A stretch of 64,000 nt of DNA from Basidiobolus meristosporus CBS 931.73 (GCA_002104905.1 MCFE01000007.1:1-64000); one strand, 5' to 3'. Positions 1 through 6,734 are shown, numbered from the stretch's first letter. Translations and numbers: made by a program. The notes: a model not told the origin generated them from the letters alone.

Positions 1-540
1 CACTCTTCCTACTCTGAAGCTGTCAAAAAGCCTGTTCCTGCTTCCTCAAGACATCCTGCTGCTCCTCCCAAGACTAAAAGAAAGTTTCCTGCCACTTCTG
101 ATTTACCTCCTGCTACTGACTGGACTGTCTGCTACTTTGCCAATTTGGAGTTTATTCCCATATCTGAGCATAGGATGTATCTCAAGCAACAAGGTTACAA
201 TTTATCCAAAATTGTTAACATGAGATTTATCAACCATCACACTCTGGAGGTAGTACTTGACAAAAGTATTGCAACACAATTCTCTGAAAATGTCTCTGAC
301 CAGTTTTACTGGGAACCTACTGACCATGCCTTTAAAGAGTTTCCTGATTCTCCAGTTTACAAGACCTTCTCATTAGAGGAATCTCTGCTCTCAAGATTCA
401 CTTCACTTATCAAAAACTCCCCTTCACCTGCTGTTACCCACTTCCTGAAAGATTATTATATCTCTCAAGCTTATCTACTTCACTCCCCCATGAACCTGAA
501 CTCCAGTGTACTCTGGGATACTGCCTTAACTTTAGCTTAG
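1..540 (+). CDS. Unit A protein, 5'-partial: Pro/Ser/Lys-rich linker plus a ~130-aa domain with an RRM-like beta-alpha-beta-beta-alpha-beta pattern (putative ORF1/Gag-like RNA-binding protein)
   Basis: Frame 1 is open from base 1 (HSSYSEAVKK...) to TAG at 538-540 and conserved in three copies. The fold assignment is inferred from hydrophobic periodicity only. Confidence 0.65.
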   Translation, partial: HSSYSEAVKKPVPASSRHPAAPPKTKRKFPATSDLPPATDWTVCYFANLEFIPISEHRMYLKQQGYNLSKIVNMRFINHHTLEVVLDKSIATQFSENVSDQFYWEPTDHAFKEFPDSPVYKTFSLEESLLSRFTSLIKNSPSPAVTHFLKDYYISQAYLLHSPMNLNSSVLWDTALTLA

Positions 541-669
541 ATTTATTCATATTCAACATAGTGTTTACTTTGGGAATCTTCTATTCCCAGCTGGCTTCTT
601 TATTTGTAGTTAGACTTGTCTGAAATCAAATAAAGATTTCACCTACTTTGGTGACTTTCCCTCCCCTAA
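1..669 (+). mobile_element. Unit A copy 1 (ORF1-like coding unit, runs off the left edge)
   Basis: High identity to 1437-2200 and 3649-4223; ends in the shared module at 592-669. Confidence 0.85.
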
Positions 670-851
670 ATTTTATATTTACCCCTGATGAGCTTTACTT
701 TATTGAAACAAACATTAGAGATGAAACAAAACATAAATTAGATTACTTATTAGAGAGGTTCTAGACCTCATAATTGGCTTCTTTATTTGTACTTAGATTA
801 GTTCTTAAGTCAAATAAAGATTTCACCAACTTGGTGACTTTCCCTCCCTAA
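670..851 (+). mobile_element. Unit B copy 1 (5'-truncated)
   Basis: Identical to 4339-4519 by eye; ends in a B-type module (775-851). Confidence 0.85.
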
Positions 852-1379
852 ACCAAGAACACTTAGCCTTGTGGTTATCCCTAACCCTTCCATACCCATG
901 GTTGTGGGTTCAAATCCTGGATCCAGCAAAATTTGATTAATAAATTGATGTGTGCTCATTGGGAGATGGCTTGATCAACCATTGGGCAAAGTAAAGGCTC
1001 TGATTGGCTGAAATCCTTGAAATGCTACTTGGCCAGATTTGCCTAGTAAATTTGGCCAGTGATTGCCCAGAAATACATCTCAGTTCCCCCAGTCTACTGG
1101 CCATTCCGGCCACAATTCAGCTACTGCAAACCAGTATAACTTAGCTCAGATATATTCAGATTCTCACTTCTCAGGCCTGGCTTTCCAGGAAACCACTCTC
1201 AGACCTAGCTAACTAGGAAATATAGTACCACTCAGCTTCTCAACTCTCAGACCTGACTTACCAGGAAGATATCTCTCAGACCTAGCTTTCTAGGAATAAC
1301 TTCAGATTAACTTGGCTTCTTTAGATACTTGTCATAAGTAAATAAAGATTTCACCACTTGGTGACTTTCCTCCCCCTAA
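852..1379 (+). ncRNA. Unit C copy 1: tRNA-headed SINE-like structured RNA
   Basis: A-box-like TAGCCTTGTGG at 864-874 and B-box GGTTCAAATCC at 907-917. Internal CCCTAACCC at 879-887, four CCTRG-CTWW-CYAGG hairpins at 1176-1294, shared 3' module at 1313-1379, no long ORF. Confidence 0.7.
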
Positions 1380-1397
1380 CCCTAACCCTAACCCTAA
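1374..1397 (+). repeat. Telomeric repeat (CCCTAA)4 at a unit junction
   Basis: Four perfect CCCTAA hexamers read directly. Confidence 0.95.
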
Positions 1398-1436
1398 ATA
1401 AAGATTTCACCAGTTGGTGACTGTCTCCCCCCCTAA
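1397..1436 (+). mobile_element. 40-bp stub consisting only of the RT-type (unit D) 3' end
   Basis: AATAAAGATTTCACCAGTTGGTGACTGTCTC7TAA carries the CTGTCTCCCCCCC variant otherwise seen only at 3605-3644. Confidence 0.8.
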
Positions 1437-2200
1437 ACCCTTTCTGCCTTTTCTGTTCTGCAAGAATCTATTGTCCCTGTGCCAACTGTTCCTGTCAACA
1501 AGACTCCCCAAGAGTCATCTGCTCCTGCTCACTCTTCCTACTCTGAATCTGTCAAAAAGCCTGCTCCTGCTTCCTCAAGAAATCTTGCTGCTCCTCCAAA
1601 GACCAAAAGAAAGTTTCCTGCCACTTCTGATCTACCTCCTGCTACTGACTGGGCTGTCTGCTACTTTGCCAATGTGGAGTTTATTCCCATATCTGAGCAT
1701 AGGATGTATCTCAAGCAACAAGGTTACAACTTATCCAAGATTGTTAACATGAGATTTATCAACCAGCACACTCTGGAGGTAGTACTTGACAAAAGTATTG
1801 CTAAAGAATTCTCTCAAAATGTCACTGACCAGTTTTACTGGGAACCTACTGACCATGCCTTTAAAGAGTTTCCTGCTTCTCCAGTTTACAAGACCTTCTC
1901 ATTAGAGGAATCTCTGCTCTCAAGATTCACTTCACTTATCAAAAACTCCCCTTCACCTGCTGTTACCCACTTCTTAAAGATTATTATATCTCTCAAGCTT
2001 ATCTACTTCACTCCCCCATGAACCTGAACTCCAGTGTACTCTGGGATACTGCCTTAACTTTAGCTTAGATTTATTCATATTCAACTTAGTGTTTACTTTG
2101 GGAATCTTCTATTCCCAGCTGGCTTCTTTATTTGTAGTTAGACTTGTCTGAAATCAAATAAAGATTTCACCTACCTTGGTGACTTTCCCTCCCCTAACCC
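1437..2200 (+). mobile_element. Unit A copy 2 (longest copy; 1-nt frameshift near the C-terminus at ~1975)
   Basis: Homologous to 1-669. Reads ttcttaaagatt versus ttcctgaaagatt in copy 1, which shifts the frame; the homologous stop is at 2066-2068. Ends CCCCTAACCC. Confidence 0.85.
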
Positions 2201-3648
2201 AAGTCAAGCTTAATAGCTGAGGTGCTAGCGCGGACGGGTGCAAACTCTCAGTTGTTGAATGCAAAAAGTTCAAATCACACCTGAGCCTTTTTTCATTTAT
2301 TTGATTTACCGGCTTCTCGGATTCAGATAAGATTAGTAGACATGGGGAACCCTGCAATTTAGTGCCACACCATGGTCATACCCTGCATGGGGTCTTACTG
2401 GTCCATGGCGGGATAAAATTTTAAGGATTTAATGGATGGATGGATGGATTTGGAGTCAGATTCAATCAAAAAATCAAATTGTTGACTAATTTAAAGAGGA
2501 AAAAATAAAAATAGTTAGTAAAGGTGATTGCACCCAAGTGAGCAATCAGCTGTGTTCTCAGTTCCTAATGGAGTGGTTCAAGGCTCTGTGCTTGGTCCTA
2601 TACTGTTTGCCATCTTCCTGAATGACTTCCCAAGACTCTCAGCTGACTGCCTGGTTACTCTCTTTGCTGATGACATCAGAATATCCTCCTCCAATGTGCA
2701 ACAAGACTCCCAGACCATCCACCAGTATCTGCAGAAGAATAATCTCCAGCTTTCCATTGCAAAGACAGTACCTTTGGGCTCTCCCATCAACTTGGAGAAC
2801 TCCACTCTACCTGCTCAGGTTTCTGCTACATATCTTGGCTTTCCTTTCCTTCCTACTGGACTAGACTCTGGAGCACACCTGAAGAAGAGAATTATCCTGG
2901 CAAGACAGGCACTCCACAAGCTACTGGCTGTTACTCCTCCTACAACTTCAGCTCCCAGCTGCCTCCTTCTACTCAAGCAGTTTGTCTTCCCTGTCCTGGA
3001 ATTTGGCTTACCACTTCTCTCTCTTACTTCTAGAGACTGCACTAAGCTTGACAAGTTTGCAGTATGGTGCATTACCTCCTTGGTGCCTCATTTGCCTGAA
3101 TGCCCCTACAGACATGCTATTCTTGGTGCTTTTGGGTTTATGCCCTATAAGATCAGACTTCTCTACCTTAGAACCAGATTATACCTCAGACTTCACAACT
3201 GCAACAACCCACTGATTAAGGCCTGGAAGAGAACACACCACACAACACCTGGCTCCTGCTGGAGAACTATACTTGGAGATCCTGAAGTCAAGAAGTTTGC
3301 TCACTATATTCTGCAGTCAGAAAAACCCAAGCTGGCCTACCTGAAGTACTTGACAGACCTTTGGCAGCAATATCTGCAGCAGCACACTCCCTTTATGATG
3401 AATATCAATCCTTATCACATTCCCCTCATTAATGTTGTTCACAAGGCATTCTTACCTCTCTTGCTACCCCCCTTCCCACTGAACAGTGTCTTGAGCACTG
3501 AAGAACTATCATCACTTCTTATTAACTTACCTACAAATTCCCCTCAGCTACACACTCTTGTATCAAAGCTACAACAGTAGCGCTGGCTTCTTTGTTTCAA
3601 CTGAAATAAAGATTTCACCTGTTGGTGACTGTCTCCCCCCCTAACCCT
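2201..3648 (+). mobile_element. Unit D: 5'-truncated non-LTR (LINE-type) reverse transcriptase unit
   Basis: RT motifs present; the shared 3' module starts 3 nt after the stop codon (3584-3648) and ends CCCTAACCCT. Confidence 0.85.
2537..3580 (+). CDS. LINE-type reverse transcriptase, C-terminal half (motifs 4-7, thumb, C-terminal extension; no CCHC or restriction-like endonuclease recognisable)
   Basis: GVVQGSVLGPILFAIFLND (motif 4), LFADDI (motif 5), KT, YLGFPF (motif 7) and FVFPVLEFGL (thumb); about 347 uninterrupted codons. Confidence 0.9.
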   Translation, partial: SEQSAVFSVPNGVVQGSVLGPILFAIFLNDFPRLSADCLVTLFADDIRISSSNVQQDSQTIHQYLQKNNLQLSIAKTVPLGSPINLENSTLPAQVSATYLGFPFLPTGLDSGAHLKKRIILARQALHKLLAVTPPTTSAPSCLLLLKQFVFPVLEFGLPLLSLTSRDCTKLDKFAVWCITSLVPHLPECPYRHAILGAFGFMPYKIRLLYLRTRLYLRLHNCNNPLIKAWKRTHHTTPGSCWRTILGDPEVKKFAHYILQSEKPKLAYLKYLTDLWQQYLQQHTPFMMNINPYHIPLINVVHKAFLPLLLPPFPLNSVLSTEELSSLLINLPTNSPQLHTLVSKLQQ

Positions 3649-4223
3649 GATTTGCCTCCTGCTACTGACTGGGCTGTCTGCTACTTTGCCAATGTGGAGT
3701 TTATTCCTATATCTGAGCATAGGATGTATCTCAAGCAACAAGGTTACAATTTATCCAAGATTGTTAACATGAGATTTATCAACCATCACACTCTGGAGGT
3801 AGTACTTGACAAAAGTATTGCTAAACAATTCTCTCAAAATGTCTCTGACCAGTTTCACTGGGAACCTACTGACCATGCCTTTAAAGAGTTTCCTGATTCT
3901 CCGGTTTACAAGACCTTCTCTTTAGAGGAATCTCTGATCTCAAGATTCACTTCACTTATCAAAAACTCCCCTTCACCTGCTGTTGCCCACTTCCTTAAGG
4001 ATTATTATATCTCTCAAGCTTATCTACTTCACTCCCCCATGAACCTGAACTCCAGTGTACTCTGGGATACTGCCTTAACTTTAGCTTAGATTTATTCATA
4101 TTCAACTTAGTGTTTACTTTGGGAATCTTCTATTCCCAGCTGGCTTCTTTATTTGTAATTAGACTTGTCTGAAATCAAATAAAGATTTCACCTACCTTGG
4201 TGACTTTCCCTCCCCCCCCCTAA
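3649..4223 (+). mobile_element. Unit A copy 3 (5'-truncated; ORF open 3649-4089)
   Basis: Homologous to copies 1 and 2; module at 4141-4223 with an expanded C run. Confidence 0.85.
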
Positions 4224-4519
4224 GCTGCTTACAAGTCCACACACCTTTCCTACTACACCTAATCCCAGGCTGGGTTCCAGTCTTGGATTATATTGATCAG
4301 AAACATCTACAATTTGTACTTCCCCCAAAACCCCTGAATTTTATATTTACCCCTGATGAGCTTTACTTTATTGAAACAAACATTAGAGATGAAACAAAAC
4401 ATAAATTAGATTACTTATTAGAGAGGTTCTAGACCTCATAATTGGCTTCTTTATTTGTACTTAGATTAGTTCTTAAGTCAAATAAAGATTTCACCAACTT
4501 GGTGACTTTCCCTCCCTAA
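4224..4519 (+). mobile_element. Unit B copy 2 (longer copy)
   Basis: Extends about 115 bp further 5' than copy 1; module at 4443-4519. Confidence 0.85.
4226..4432 (+). CDS. Unit B protein C-terminus, 68 codons, unknown family (CLQVHTPFLLHLIPGWVPVLDYIDQKHLQFVLPPKPLNFIFTPDELYFIETNIRDETKHKLDYLLERF*)
   Basis: Frame open from the unit junction to TAG at 4430-4432, 10 nt before the 3' module, as in units A and D. It has no start codon, so the ORF track missed it. Confidence 0.55.
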   Translation, partial: CLQVHTPFLLHLIPGWVPVLDYIDQKHLQFVLPPKPLNFIFTPDELYFIETNIRDETKHKLDYLLERF

Positions 4520-5046
4520 ACCAAGAACACTTAGCCTTGTGGTTATCCCTAACCCTTCCATACCCATGGTAGTGGGTTCAAATCCTGGATCCAACAAAAT
4601 TTGATCAATAAATTGATGTGTGCTCATTGGGAGATGGCTTGATCAACCATTGGGCAAAGTAAAGGCTCTGATTGGCTGAAATCCTTGAAATGCTAATTGG
4701 TCAGATTTGCCTAGTAAATTTGGCCAGTGATCGCCCAGATATTTCCCTCAATTCCCCCAGTCTACTGGCCATTCTGGCCACAAATCAGCTACCGCAAATC
4801 AGTACACTTTACCTCAGATATACTCAGATTCTCAATTCTCAGGCCTGGCTTTCCAGGAAACCTCTCTCAGACCTAGCTTACTAGGAAATATAGTACCACT
4901 CAGCTTCTTAACTCTCAGACCTGGCTTACCAGGAAGATACCTCTCAGACCTAGCTTTCTAGGAATTACTTCAGATTAACTTGGCTTCTTTAGATACTTGT
5001 CATCAGTAAATAAAGATTTCACCACTTGGTGACTTTCCTCCCCCTA
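4520..5046 (+). ncRNA. Unit C copy 2: tRNA-headed SINE-like structured RNA (most proximal unit)
   Basis: A-box 4532-4542, CCCTAACCC 4547-4555, B-box 4575-4585, hairpin array 4844-4962, module 4981-5046. Confidence 0.7.
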
Positions 5047-6398
5047 GGATCAATTTTCACTCCAGAAATTAGCTGATCTTTGATCATTTTGCGCAAATAA
5101 TCAAAATTGATGTGCCCAAATCTCCTGTGCCAAAGCATTGGTGTTTCTTCATTTAAGTTACTTATATTGGCTTCCAAATATGATGGAATATAAGTCAACT
5201 TATATAGATTCTGATCTCTGATGCCCAAAGCAATATGAGCACCATTTTGATCAGTGATCCTGCCTCCAGAATTGTCAAAGCTGAAACTGAGTCCTTCTGC
5301 TGTAGCCCTGCTTACAGGGAGTAGGTTCTGGGCTATTTCTGGTACATAGAGTACTTCTTTAAAGGTCAGTGTATGGCTTCCTTCACTGCTTCTAAGGTTT
5401 ACTTGGATAGTTCCTTCTCCCACTGCATCAAGTGTTCTATTGTCACCCATGAAAACCTTCTTAATTAGAATTTCTTGATATTGGGTAAAAAGTACTTTTT
5501 GGTGTGTAAAGTGTTGAGAAGCTCCAGAGTCAATATACCACATCTGAGAATCCTTGTTTGTGGTCATATTTAGTGCAGATATGAATAGTCTATCTTCAGT
5601 TGTTGCAGCATTTCCATATTCAGGCTTCTTTTGCTGATAATCTCTCTTTTTGAGACACCGGTCTGATGTGTGTCCTTTCCTTTTGCAGTAGTTGCAAAAT
5701 AGGTTGCTGTTGCCTTTGTAGGGTCTTGGGTACTTCCTTTGTTGGTTATCATTGCTTATTAAAGCATTTTCTTCTTCCTTCTTATTGGCGCTTGTTTTTT
5801 TTAATTCTTCATCCAGGAGCCTTCCATATACGTAATTTAAGGTCAAATCTTCAGTTCTGGACTCTAGGGCTGATACAAGGCCCTGAAACTTGTCTGTCAG
5901 GCTATTCAGGATGGTAACTATCACATCCTCATCAGTAGTTGGTACACCCACAGATTCCATCTCATCGACCAGCAGGGTAATTCTGTTAATTAGATTTTTC
6001 ATTTCTTCTCCTGGCAACATCTTTGTAGTAAAGAATTTTCTTCTCAGATACATTTTCTTGGCAGCTGAACATGACTGGTAGGTGTCTTCTAATGCCTTCC
6101 AGGCATTCTTTGCCATTTTTGCTCTTGAGCATTGAATTAGCAATTTGTCCTTGACATTAAGGCAAATGCAGTTAAAGGCACTTTGTTCTTTCTTCTGGTA
6201 CCTTAAGGCTTCCTCTCCCACGTTTTTAGGAGGGCATTCTTCTCCCATGGCAATATCCCAAAGGCCTCTTTCTTGTAGCAGCATCTTCATCTTCACCTTC
6301 CACACTTGGTAGTTAGATCCATCCAACTTTTCAGCAGAGGGAAAAATTCCAGTAATAGCAGTAGTAGACATTGCAGAGAGTGACAGCTCGGGGCTCAT
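5047..6398 (-). CDS. Copia Gag-Pol polyprotein, truncated before the integrase core
   Basis: EKLDGSNYQVWKVKMKMLL, zinc knuckle CNYCKRKGHTSDRC, protease WYIDSGASQH and LWHRRFGH; ATG lies within the PBS; no internal stops. Confidence 0.92.
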
Positions 6399-6402
6399 AA
6401 CC
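6391..6402 (-). promoter_or_regulatory. Primer-binding site GGTTATGAGCCC (copia-type)
   Basis: Directly follows the LTR CA end on the minus strand and resembles the GGTTATGGGCCC PBS of copia elements. Confidence 0.85.
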
Positions 6403-6734
6403 TGTTGTAAGAGTCTTGGAGATATTGGAAGTGATTGGGAGGACAAGTAGATTATGTGGTTTTCACTTAATAGTTTATTGAATGTAAAAGTAGTATTTAT
6501 ACTTTTACCTGGTCTTGGCATTACAAACACGTAGAATAGGTTAAGGAAGGTCCCAAGAACATGTGTGCAAAGTTTGGGGCTGTTTGGACAACTTATCAAA
6601 TTTTCATGTTCTGGGTAAATATTCTAAGTAAATCCCGACAAGGAATTTGGTCAGTATTCTCTAGGATTTGAAGGTGATGATCTAAGTGACTAAGTTAGGT
6701 GAATATTTAGGTGGAAATACGAATTTTTACAACA
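6403..6734 (-). repeat. 5' LTR of the copia element (332 bp)
   Basis: 8-bp terminal inverted repeats; colinear similarity to 56200-56540. Confidence 0.88.

Follow-up and report, generated by a model that had tools for sequence, protein, structure and literature searches.

Telomere-dedicated retroelements are known from few lineages, and each of them bears on the relation between telomerase and retrotransposons. HeT-A, TART and TAHRE of Drosophila, where flies have no telomerase repeats, are telomeric long interspersed nuclear elements (LINEs) of the jockey clade with oligo(A) ends. TRAS1 and SART1 of Bombyx are R1-clade LINEs with an endonuclease of the apurinic/apyrimidinic type (APE) and poly(A), specific for telomere repeats and inserted at a fixed nucleotide in long TTAGG tracts; in SART1, a structure of the 3' untranslated region (UTR) is recognised by the reverse transcriptase (RT). 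Athena and the Terminons of bdelloid rotifers and Coprina of fungi are endonuclease-lacking Penelope-like elements (PLEs), which can carry many extra open reading frames (ORFs) and for which base-pairing with the G overhang was proposed as the priming step. Stringent-type pairs of LINEs and short interspersed nuclear elements (SINEs), such as UnaL2 and UnaSINE1 of eel, share a 3' stem-loop, and HAL1 is an ORF1-only derivative of L1. SINE tails are treated in PMC5786205. The MoTeR, FoTeR and Cnl1 elements form one clade with SLACS and CRE, with a single ORF and a C-terminal restriction-enzyme-like (REL) endonuclease of the pattern CCHC...RHD...E...PD (PMC12857005). Here we describe an array of retroelements at positions 1-5046 of a 64,000-nt window, the first 64 kb of contig C1034 (267,059 bp) of Basidiobolus meristosporus CBS 931.73. 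Most likely, several complete APE-type LINE lineages, a SINE and an ORF1-only element share here one 3' module tailed with the telomere unit, and units copied in trans are attached to chromosome ends.

Positions 1-6000 were read directly, and related copies were searched in the 89.5-Mb assembly (1,366 contigs); all comparisons were made with natural copies instead of consensus sequences. Nine units are stacked head-to-tail on the + strand of 1-5046, with their 5' ends toward the terminus and the C-strand telomere unit at every 3' end. From the terminus inward, they are A1 (1-669), B1 (670-851), C1 (852-1379), a module-only stub (1396-1436), A2 (1437-2200), a composite unit with the LINE D (2201-3648), A3 (3649-4223), B2 (4224-4519) and C2 (4520-5046), so that the order A-B-C is present twice. 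The initial annotation of the window had proposed these nine units, their boundaries, the single strand and the common 3' end, all of which the direct reading bears out; its reading of the polarity as that of end-attaching elements also holds. A mirror-image array is present on the - strand at the opposite end of C1034. Since outward-facing arrays lie at both of its ends, C1034 looks like a nearly complete mini-chromosome, and, on this 267-kb mini-chromosome, 1-5046 form the inner 5 kb of a terminal array of retroelements. This picture agrees with microscopy of Basidiobolus ranarum, for which between ~60 and many hundreds of small chromosomes were estimated (quoted in PMC3281927).

The module shared by the nine units is ~75 nt long and consists of two hairpins, a C-rich tail and CCCTAA. 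Its 16-nt core AAATAAAGATTTCACC has nine matches, all on the + strand (at 628, 812, 1340, 1396, 2156, 3604, 4177, 4480 and 5008), while 0.08 matches are expected by chance from shuffles. The partner motif TTGGTGACT..TC follows each core copy, and no further module copies are found in the remaining 59 kb of the window. When the nine tails are aligned, GGCTTCTTTATT...AAATAAAGATTTCACC-loop-GGTGA is followed by a pyrimidine run and then by CCCTA(A), with the core invariant. RNA folding predicts for each tail hairpin 1 (CUUUAUU...AAUAAAG), hairpin 2 (CACC-loop-GGUG) and a single-stranded, C-rich pyrimidine tail with one CCCUAA at the end (z-scores -2.7 to -4.1). In an Rfam scan of 1-6000 all matches were far below gathering scores, including that of K10_TLS on hairpin 1 of B. 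The run of C before TAA varies genome-wide from 3 to 10 bases among copies of the same family (9 in A3, 4211-4223), which suggests slippage within the tail, either in reverse transcription or in replication.

A search of the whole assembly with the module, a check suggested in the initial annotation, returned 1,515 copies (117 forward, 1,398 reverse), clustered beside terminal (TTAGGG)n. Among the copies listed, the distance to a (TTAGGG)n-terminated contig end is at most ~5-22 kb, and the 5' end always points to the terminus; the loci sampled from this genome include at least seven module-bearing families. Unit order varies among chromosome ends. The distribution of unit lengths, from 43 to 2,249 nt, peaks at 527-534 nt; with the exception of the SINE, the 5' start differs in almost all units. 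The very unequal strands of the module copies, together with some inverted arrays, could be taken as signs that chimeric long reads or collapsed repeats made the stack. We find such an assembly artefact hardly credible, as hundreds of contig ends show the same architecture with differing junctions, and a relative is present in an independent public run. Matches to (CCCTAA)5 are skewed in the same manner (73 forward, 7,145 reverse), and from both skews it follows that the telomere is on the right in nearly all contigs that bear one. Lengths of ~20 kb or ~170 kb are common among these contigs, which we suspect to be a product of the assembly procedure.

The D fragment of the window (2528-3648) is 99.5% identical to 3655-4771 of a natural full-length copy of ~4,795 nt and is thus truncated at position 3655. 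It contains the last 350 codons of ORF2 (stop 3578-3580), which encode the C-terminal part of an RT from the fingers and palm motifs to the C-terminus (RVT_1, E=4e-11), and then the module and CCCTAACCCT. The D family has more than 1,500 candidate matches at ~99% identity, with open frames from 350 to 922 aa, and in many of them the 922-aa frame is open. Full-length copies at two contig ends (L060 and L059) consist of terminal (CCCTAA)n, three or eight 100-nt monomers, a leader, ORF1 of ~500 aa, ORF2 of 922 aa at a distance of 3 nt, and the module. The complete ORF2 matches RVT_1 at E=1.7e-24, and the best solved relatives of its RT are L1 ORF2p structures. In the N-terminal region, the match to Exo_endo_phos_2 (E=4e-4) stays under the Pfam cut-off, while a profile of the domain matches the endonuclease structures of L1 (1e-11) and TRAS1 (1wdu; 9e-9). 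The alignment keeps the N, Y, GDxN, D and SDH positions of APE endonucleases, with the metal-binding E replaced by a conserved D, and the catalytic residues are conserved over lineages that are 48-63% identical. D ORF2 is thus predicted to carry an apparently intact APE-type endonuclease at its N-terminus; Pfam detected no REL domain in it. Distant matches of ORF2 are APE-RT proteins with 25-31% identity, and proteins 48-80% identical to it are present in ENA and Logan assemblies. Because full-length copies hold ORF1, the APE/RT ORF2 and the module on one unit, D can be classified, on its sequence features, as an autonomous two-ORF LINE of the APE type, and the copy in the window is merely 5'-truncated.

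Some features of the 5' region and the tail of D were observed as well. Among copies the number of monomers is 3 to 9, and full-length D starts at a monomer boundary. A TATA-like motif, CCATCCATC(C/T)AT(A/T)AAT, occurs in the 100-nt monomers of D (L060, reverse complement 196-500), in the 101-nt monomers of A (L042, reverse complement 455-1366) and in the 5' region of a relative 58% identical in ORF2 (L075, 1-80); the 5' monomers may act as promoters. In both full-length copies the leader contains an internal CCCTAACCCTAA, that is (CCCTAA)2, 44 nt past the last monomer and ~80 nt before the start of ORF1 (L060 on C443, reverse complement 543-554; L059 on C425, reverse complement 1063-1074). 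It is missing at the matching place of the relative, where GCAGTCACA is directly followed by TTTTGATC. The leader (CCCTAA)2 is a candidate binding site for a telomere protein and may serve as a promoter element. On contig C2, three exact 120-nt tandem repeats of the D tail are found (C2:259,990-260,260; L012-L015), each beginning at CTTACCTAC, where the D sequence TTAACTTACC overlaps CCCTAAC of the tail. This suggests repeated template jumps or slippage at the TAAC microhomology.

The unit 2201-3648, which the initial annotation had treated as one RT-encoding unit, does contain a LINE RT, but it is composite, and only 2528-3648 belong to the truncated LINE. At its 5' end lies a foreign insert on the + strand (2201-2425), of which 222 nt (2201-2422) copy, at 95% identity, one internal locus (C973:15912-16133) with T runs. 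Neither the insert nor the C973 locus is a tRNA according to ARAGORN, and the insert belongs to no Rfam family. Between the insert and D, a 100-nt 5' monomer of the D family is inverted (2426-2527, - strand): its identity to reverse-complemented D is 98%, and in all other contigs it matches the strand opposite to D. The 5' end of the unit looks like a chimeric retrocopy, which may have arisen through template switching or a 5' inversion of the twin-priming kind. The stub (1396-1436) is an extremely 5'-truncated tail of D type that comprises the module only, with 97% identity to D 4732-4766 and the tail GACTGTCTCCCCCCCTAA; it is preceded by (CCCTAA)4 (1374-1397, + strand), whose first repeat is part of the C1 tail.

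B1 and B2 are the last 182 nt and 296 nt of a second LINE family. B1 comprises the end of ORF2, the 3' UTR, the module and CCCTAA, and matches the 3' end of a copy that encodes an RT (L066) with 98.3% identity. B1 and B2 are completely identical over 182 nt, with different lengths and 5' ends. Since copies elsewhere run upstream into an RT ORF of 560 codons with a YADD motif, B represents the 3' part of a second LINE lineage; F, a third one, adjoins B in L066. ORF2 identity among D, B and F is 44-51% (~51% for B and D), and still the module core is common to all three. Judged by their coding sequences, the genome contains several diverged, complete APE-type LINE lineages, D and B in the array and at least one more elsewhere. 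The 58%-identical relative, found in an unrelated public run, carries the monomer motif CCATCCATCCATAAAT in its 5' region and ends in the same two hairpins followed by CCCTAACCCTAACC. As such a distant relative shares this end, the module is probably an old, conserved feature of this LINE group.

The A family has an ORF1 and no ORF2. A full copy of ~1.8 kb contains about nine 101-nt monomers, an ORF of 242 codons, a 3' UTR and the module. In the window, A1 is cut at its 5' side by the contig start and is 97.6% identical to 1136-1801 of a natural 1.8-kb copy (L042); it contains the C-terminal part of the ORF (1-540, stop 538-540), the 3' UTR, the module and CCCCTAA. A2 and A3 are 5'-truncated, A2 with a frameshift at ~1975 and the tail CCCCTAACCC. 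A1, A2 and A3 share 96.7-97.2% identity, and each has a different 5' end. The ORF of A shows no similarity to the D ORF of the window, and its likeness emerged only against D ORF1: over its last 160 residues, A shares 35% identity with the C-terminal domain of D ORF1 (E=1e-21), and this part of A can be aligned with ORF1 of four LINEs, with the positions W, Y, R, IVN, LE..D and FLK invariant. Most full-length A copies are free of stop codons. In eleven copies, which were compared with one shared reference copy and are therefore not independent, differences at the three codon positions are 56:27:103, and 54% of them are synonymous, compared with 23% expected. This skew and the synonymous excess show that the protein was under purifying selection while the family spread. 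The AlphaFold model has a 40-residue helix, a disordered linker, a beta-alpha-beta-beta-alpha-beta domain (pLDDT ~90) and a helical domain. The top fold matches of this alpha-beta domain in VIA-align are mostly RNA recognition motifs (RRMs) at a middling and only suggestive level (Z 6-8.4), and Foldseek on the model gave nothing below E=0.07. The A protein is predicted to have a coiled coil, then a domain that may be RRM-like, and a helical domain at the C-terminus. By its ORF1 homology and purifying selection, A resembles HeT-A or HAL1.

C1 and C2 are both full-length at 527 nt and are 94.5% identical; C2 is the innermost unit of the array. A putative A box TAGCCTTGTGG, which agrees with 10 of 11 positions of the A-box consensus, lies at ~864 in C1, and a putative B box GGTTCAAATCC follows ~43 nt away (~907), and then the body and the LINE-type module, whose core is the same as in D, B and F. 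The length is fixed (the 527-534-nt peak in unit spacing), the 5' start is identical in at least 12 copies, and about 30 of the first 100 module matches listed are of this type. No tRNA was detected by ARAGORN in C or the rest of the window, and C has no Rfam match. By its box-like motifs and its fixed length, C is a SINE-like non-coding RNA of 527 bp with putative tRNA-type boxes, probably transcribed by RNA polymerase III (Pol III).

From the window alone, the initial annotation had drawn a segmented retroelement, in which the RT, one or more RNA-binding proteins and a non-coding RNA are obligate segments on separate RNAs, none of them autonomous; it is true that within the window the RT piece and the ORF1 piece lie in separate units with a common tail. 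Such a division is very improbable now, since natural full-length copies of the RT family have their own ORF1 directly upstream of ORF2, the D copy of the window is simply truncated, and B, which had been taken for a second protein, is another autonomous LINE with its own RT. A and C match the established pattern of non-autonomous elements that borrow the 3' recognition tail of a LINE. The unit bodies are not all unrelated, as had been supposed, because B is related to D through ORF2. The earlier identification of A as an ORF1-like protein holds. C had been called a tRNA-headed non-coding RNA; it is a SINE-like RNA with A- and B-box-like motifs and without a tRNA call. The system, then, does not lie beyond naming: it consists of stringent-type LINEs specialised for telomeres, whose 3' tail is common to a SINE and an ORF1-only derivative.

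The junctions give information on how the units were added. Among 112 non-redundant 3' ends of units, 7 have only CCCTA, 83 have one CCCTAA, 15 have two, four have three and three have four; almost all of these junctions are unique. The outermost 5' ends are capped directly by 150-240 nt of (CCCTAA)n. At the inner edge of the array, C2 (...CCCCCTA) joins a truncated copia-type element with long terminal repeats (LTRs) at GGATCAATT, where intact copia reads ...GCTGGG immediately followed by GGATCAATT. This copia remnant (5047-6599, - strand; Pfam matches to gag, a protease-side beta-barrel and pre-integrase) lies outside the system. The junction is at a site that is not telomere-like (...GATCC side), shows no duplication, and the distal half of copia is missing. 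The innermost SINE thus abuts a truncated copia without a telomere tract, which favours attachment to short or broken ends. Target-site duplications are not found, as units abut each other or the truncated copia, and this is expected if elements were added to ends rather than inserted. Overall, the junctions agree with a process in which cDNA is added to ends that are broken or very short and are recapped afterwards; insertion into the body of a long telomere tract explains them less well. The copia family is very abundant (more than 2,400 candidate matches at ~98% identity), and the copy of the window is cut exactly at the array boundary; another chromosome end (L024) meets the same family at a different point, after a short degenerate stretch of telomere.

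For the terminal attachment that we favour, the following process may be proposed. The ORF2 protein of a LINE would recognise the module, and A and C would be copied in trans through the module that they borrowed from LINEs. The terminal CCCUAA would pair with the TTAGGG-3' end, and reverse transcription would proceed outward and often halt early, leaving 5' truncations. Telomerase would then recap the new end, and repeated cycles would build up a head-to-tail stack with 3' ends toward the centromere.

Insertion could also depend on the endonuclease, with APE nicking the G strand inside double-stranded telomere repeats, as in TRAS1 and SART1, followed by target-primed reverse transcription and no priming at free ends. 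The conserved catalytic residues across diverged lineages, the profile matches to the TRAS1 and L1 endonucleases and the existence of internal arrays speak for it. Against it, telomere tracts do not border the units on both sides, only one CCCTAA is present at 74% of junctions, the SINE-copia joint lacks a TTAGGG-like target, a duplication and the distal half of copia, and the catalytic E is D. We give this route a lower but appreciable probability.

Spread at the DNA level through subtelomeric recombination, break-induced replication or tandem duplication, starting from a small number of old insertions and with retrotransposition to ends as a minor process, might explain the exact D-tail repeats of contig C2, the identity of B1 and B2, the repeated A-B-C order and an inverted array on C781. 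Some local tandem duplication does happen, the 120-nt D tails being an example. As the general explanation it is improbable: the 5' truncation points differ between B1 and B2 and among A1, A2 and A3, nearly every junction is unique, unit order differs between ends, and D copies are ~99% identical genome-wide with open frames. Moreover, duplication of the B-C block as a whole is contradicted by the 5.5% difference between C1 and C2, since B1 and B2 do not differ.

Several observations weigh against terminal attachment by module-directed priming, or against parts of it. The predominance of single-CCCTAA ends (83 of 112; 74%) would not result from simple priming at the tip of a ~200-nt telomere. 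With an apparently intact APE domain, a nick and not a free end may start some or all insertions. An array of four units is internal at C613:95,393-98,724 (95-99 kb in a 218-kb contig), and at C781:58,172-61,288 a + array meets a - array tail to tail, beside a terminal array; these exceptions could be relics of end fusion, inverted duplications or assembly chimeras. RNAalifold on nine family representatives gave 13 conserved pairs and zero compensatory changes, so that the hairpins are supported by folding energy and by conserved sequence in lineages that are 44-51% identical in protein. The RRM assignment of the A protein is also only of middling strength.

A further step beyond terminal attachment is that these elements form a second end-building system beside telomerase, with nick-free priming on short or broken 3' ends, and that genome-wide healing of breaks, the truncated copia at 5047 being an example, allowed or drove fragmentation into hundreds of stable mini-chromosomes, among them C1034. 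This is speculative, and we think it rather unlikely.

Functionally, the elements resemble the telomeric LINEs HeT-A and TART of Drosophila (reviewed in PMC4700185). They share with these the terminal head-to-tail arrays, the 3' ends toward the centromere, the frequent 5' truncation and, probably, the healing of broken ends, and A, like HeT-A, is an abundant gag/ORF1-only element, presumably dependent on the RT of a partner. The differences are that units here end in CCCTAA, that telomerase repeats are kept as terminal DNA, so that ends are still (TTAGGG)n-capped with 150-240 nt of (CCCTAA)n distal to the arrays, and that a SINE of presumed Pol III type takes part. To our knowledge, the shared 3' hairpin module has no counterpart in Drosophila.

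With TRAS and SART, the system has in common an APE endonuclease with RT, coexistence with telomerase-type repeats and a fixed orientation, but it has no poly(A), its tail is the telomere unit, and the tracts between units are mostly a single repeat. Athena and Coprina are similar in that their RNA ends 3' in the reverse complement of the telomere repeat, their 5' ends point to the terminus and their units are separated by short telomere stretches; however, the RT here is of LINE type, with an APE domain and a LINE ORF1, and not of PLE type. MoTeR1 and MoTeR2 of Magnaporthe, FoTeR of Fusarium and Cnl1 of Cryptococcus are likewise fungal, non-LTR and confined to chromosome ends, with variable 5' tandem repeats, and MoTeR2 is a non-autonomous partner; the difference lies in the two ORFs and the N-terminal APE endonuclease of the present LINEs. 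As in UnaL2 and UnaSINE1, the SINE combines putative Pol III boxes, a body and the 3' tail of its partner LINE, with a hairpin instead of poly(A) as the presumed recognition signal, and like HAL1, A is an ORF1-only derivative mobilised, as we infer, in trans. Those elements, however, are dispersed with target-site duplications, whereas the present ones are restricted to chromosome ends and the terminal repeat of their tail is the telomere unit. Full-text literature searches found no description of this system in Basidiobolus and no published precedent for a SINE confined to chromosome ends.

In summary, traits that are separate elsewhere are combined in B. meristosporus: the two-ORF LINE with APE endonuclease known from silkworm, the tail of telomere units known from the Penelope-like elements of rotifers and fungi, a selected ORF1-only partner like HeT-A, and a SINE confined to chromosome ends. 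With ~1,500 very young copies at hundreds of ends, the choice of RNAs by a 3' hairpin and the need for an endonuclease at a natural DNA end become directly testable, and so does the question whether retroelements can stabilise new chromosome ends.

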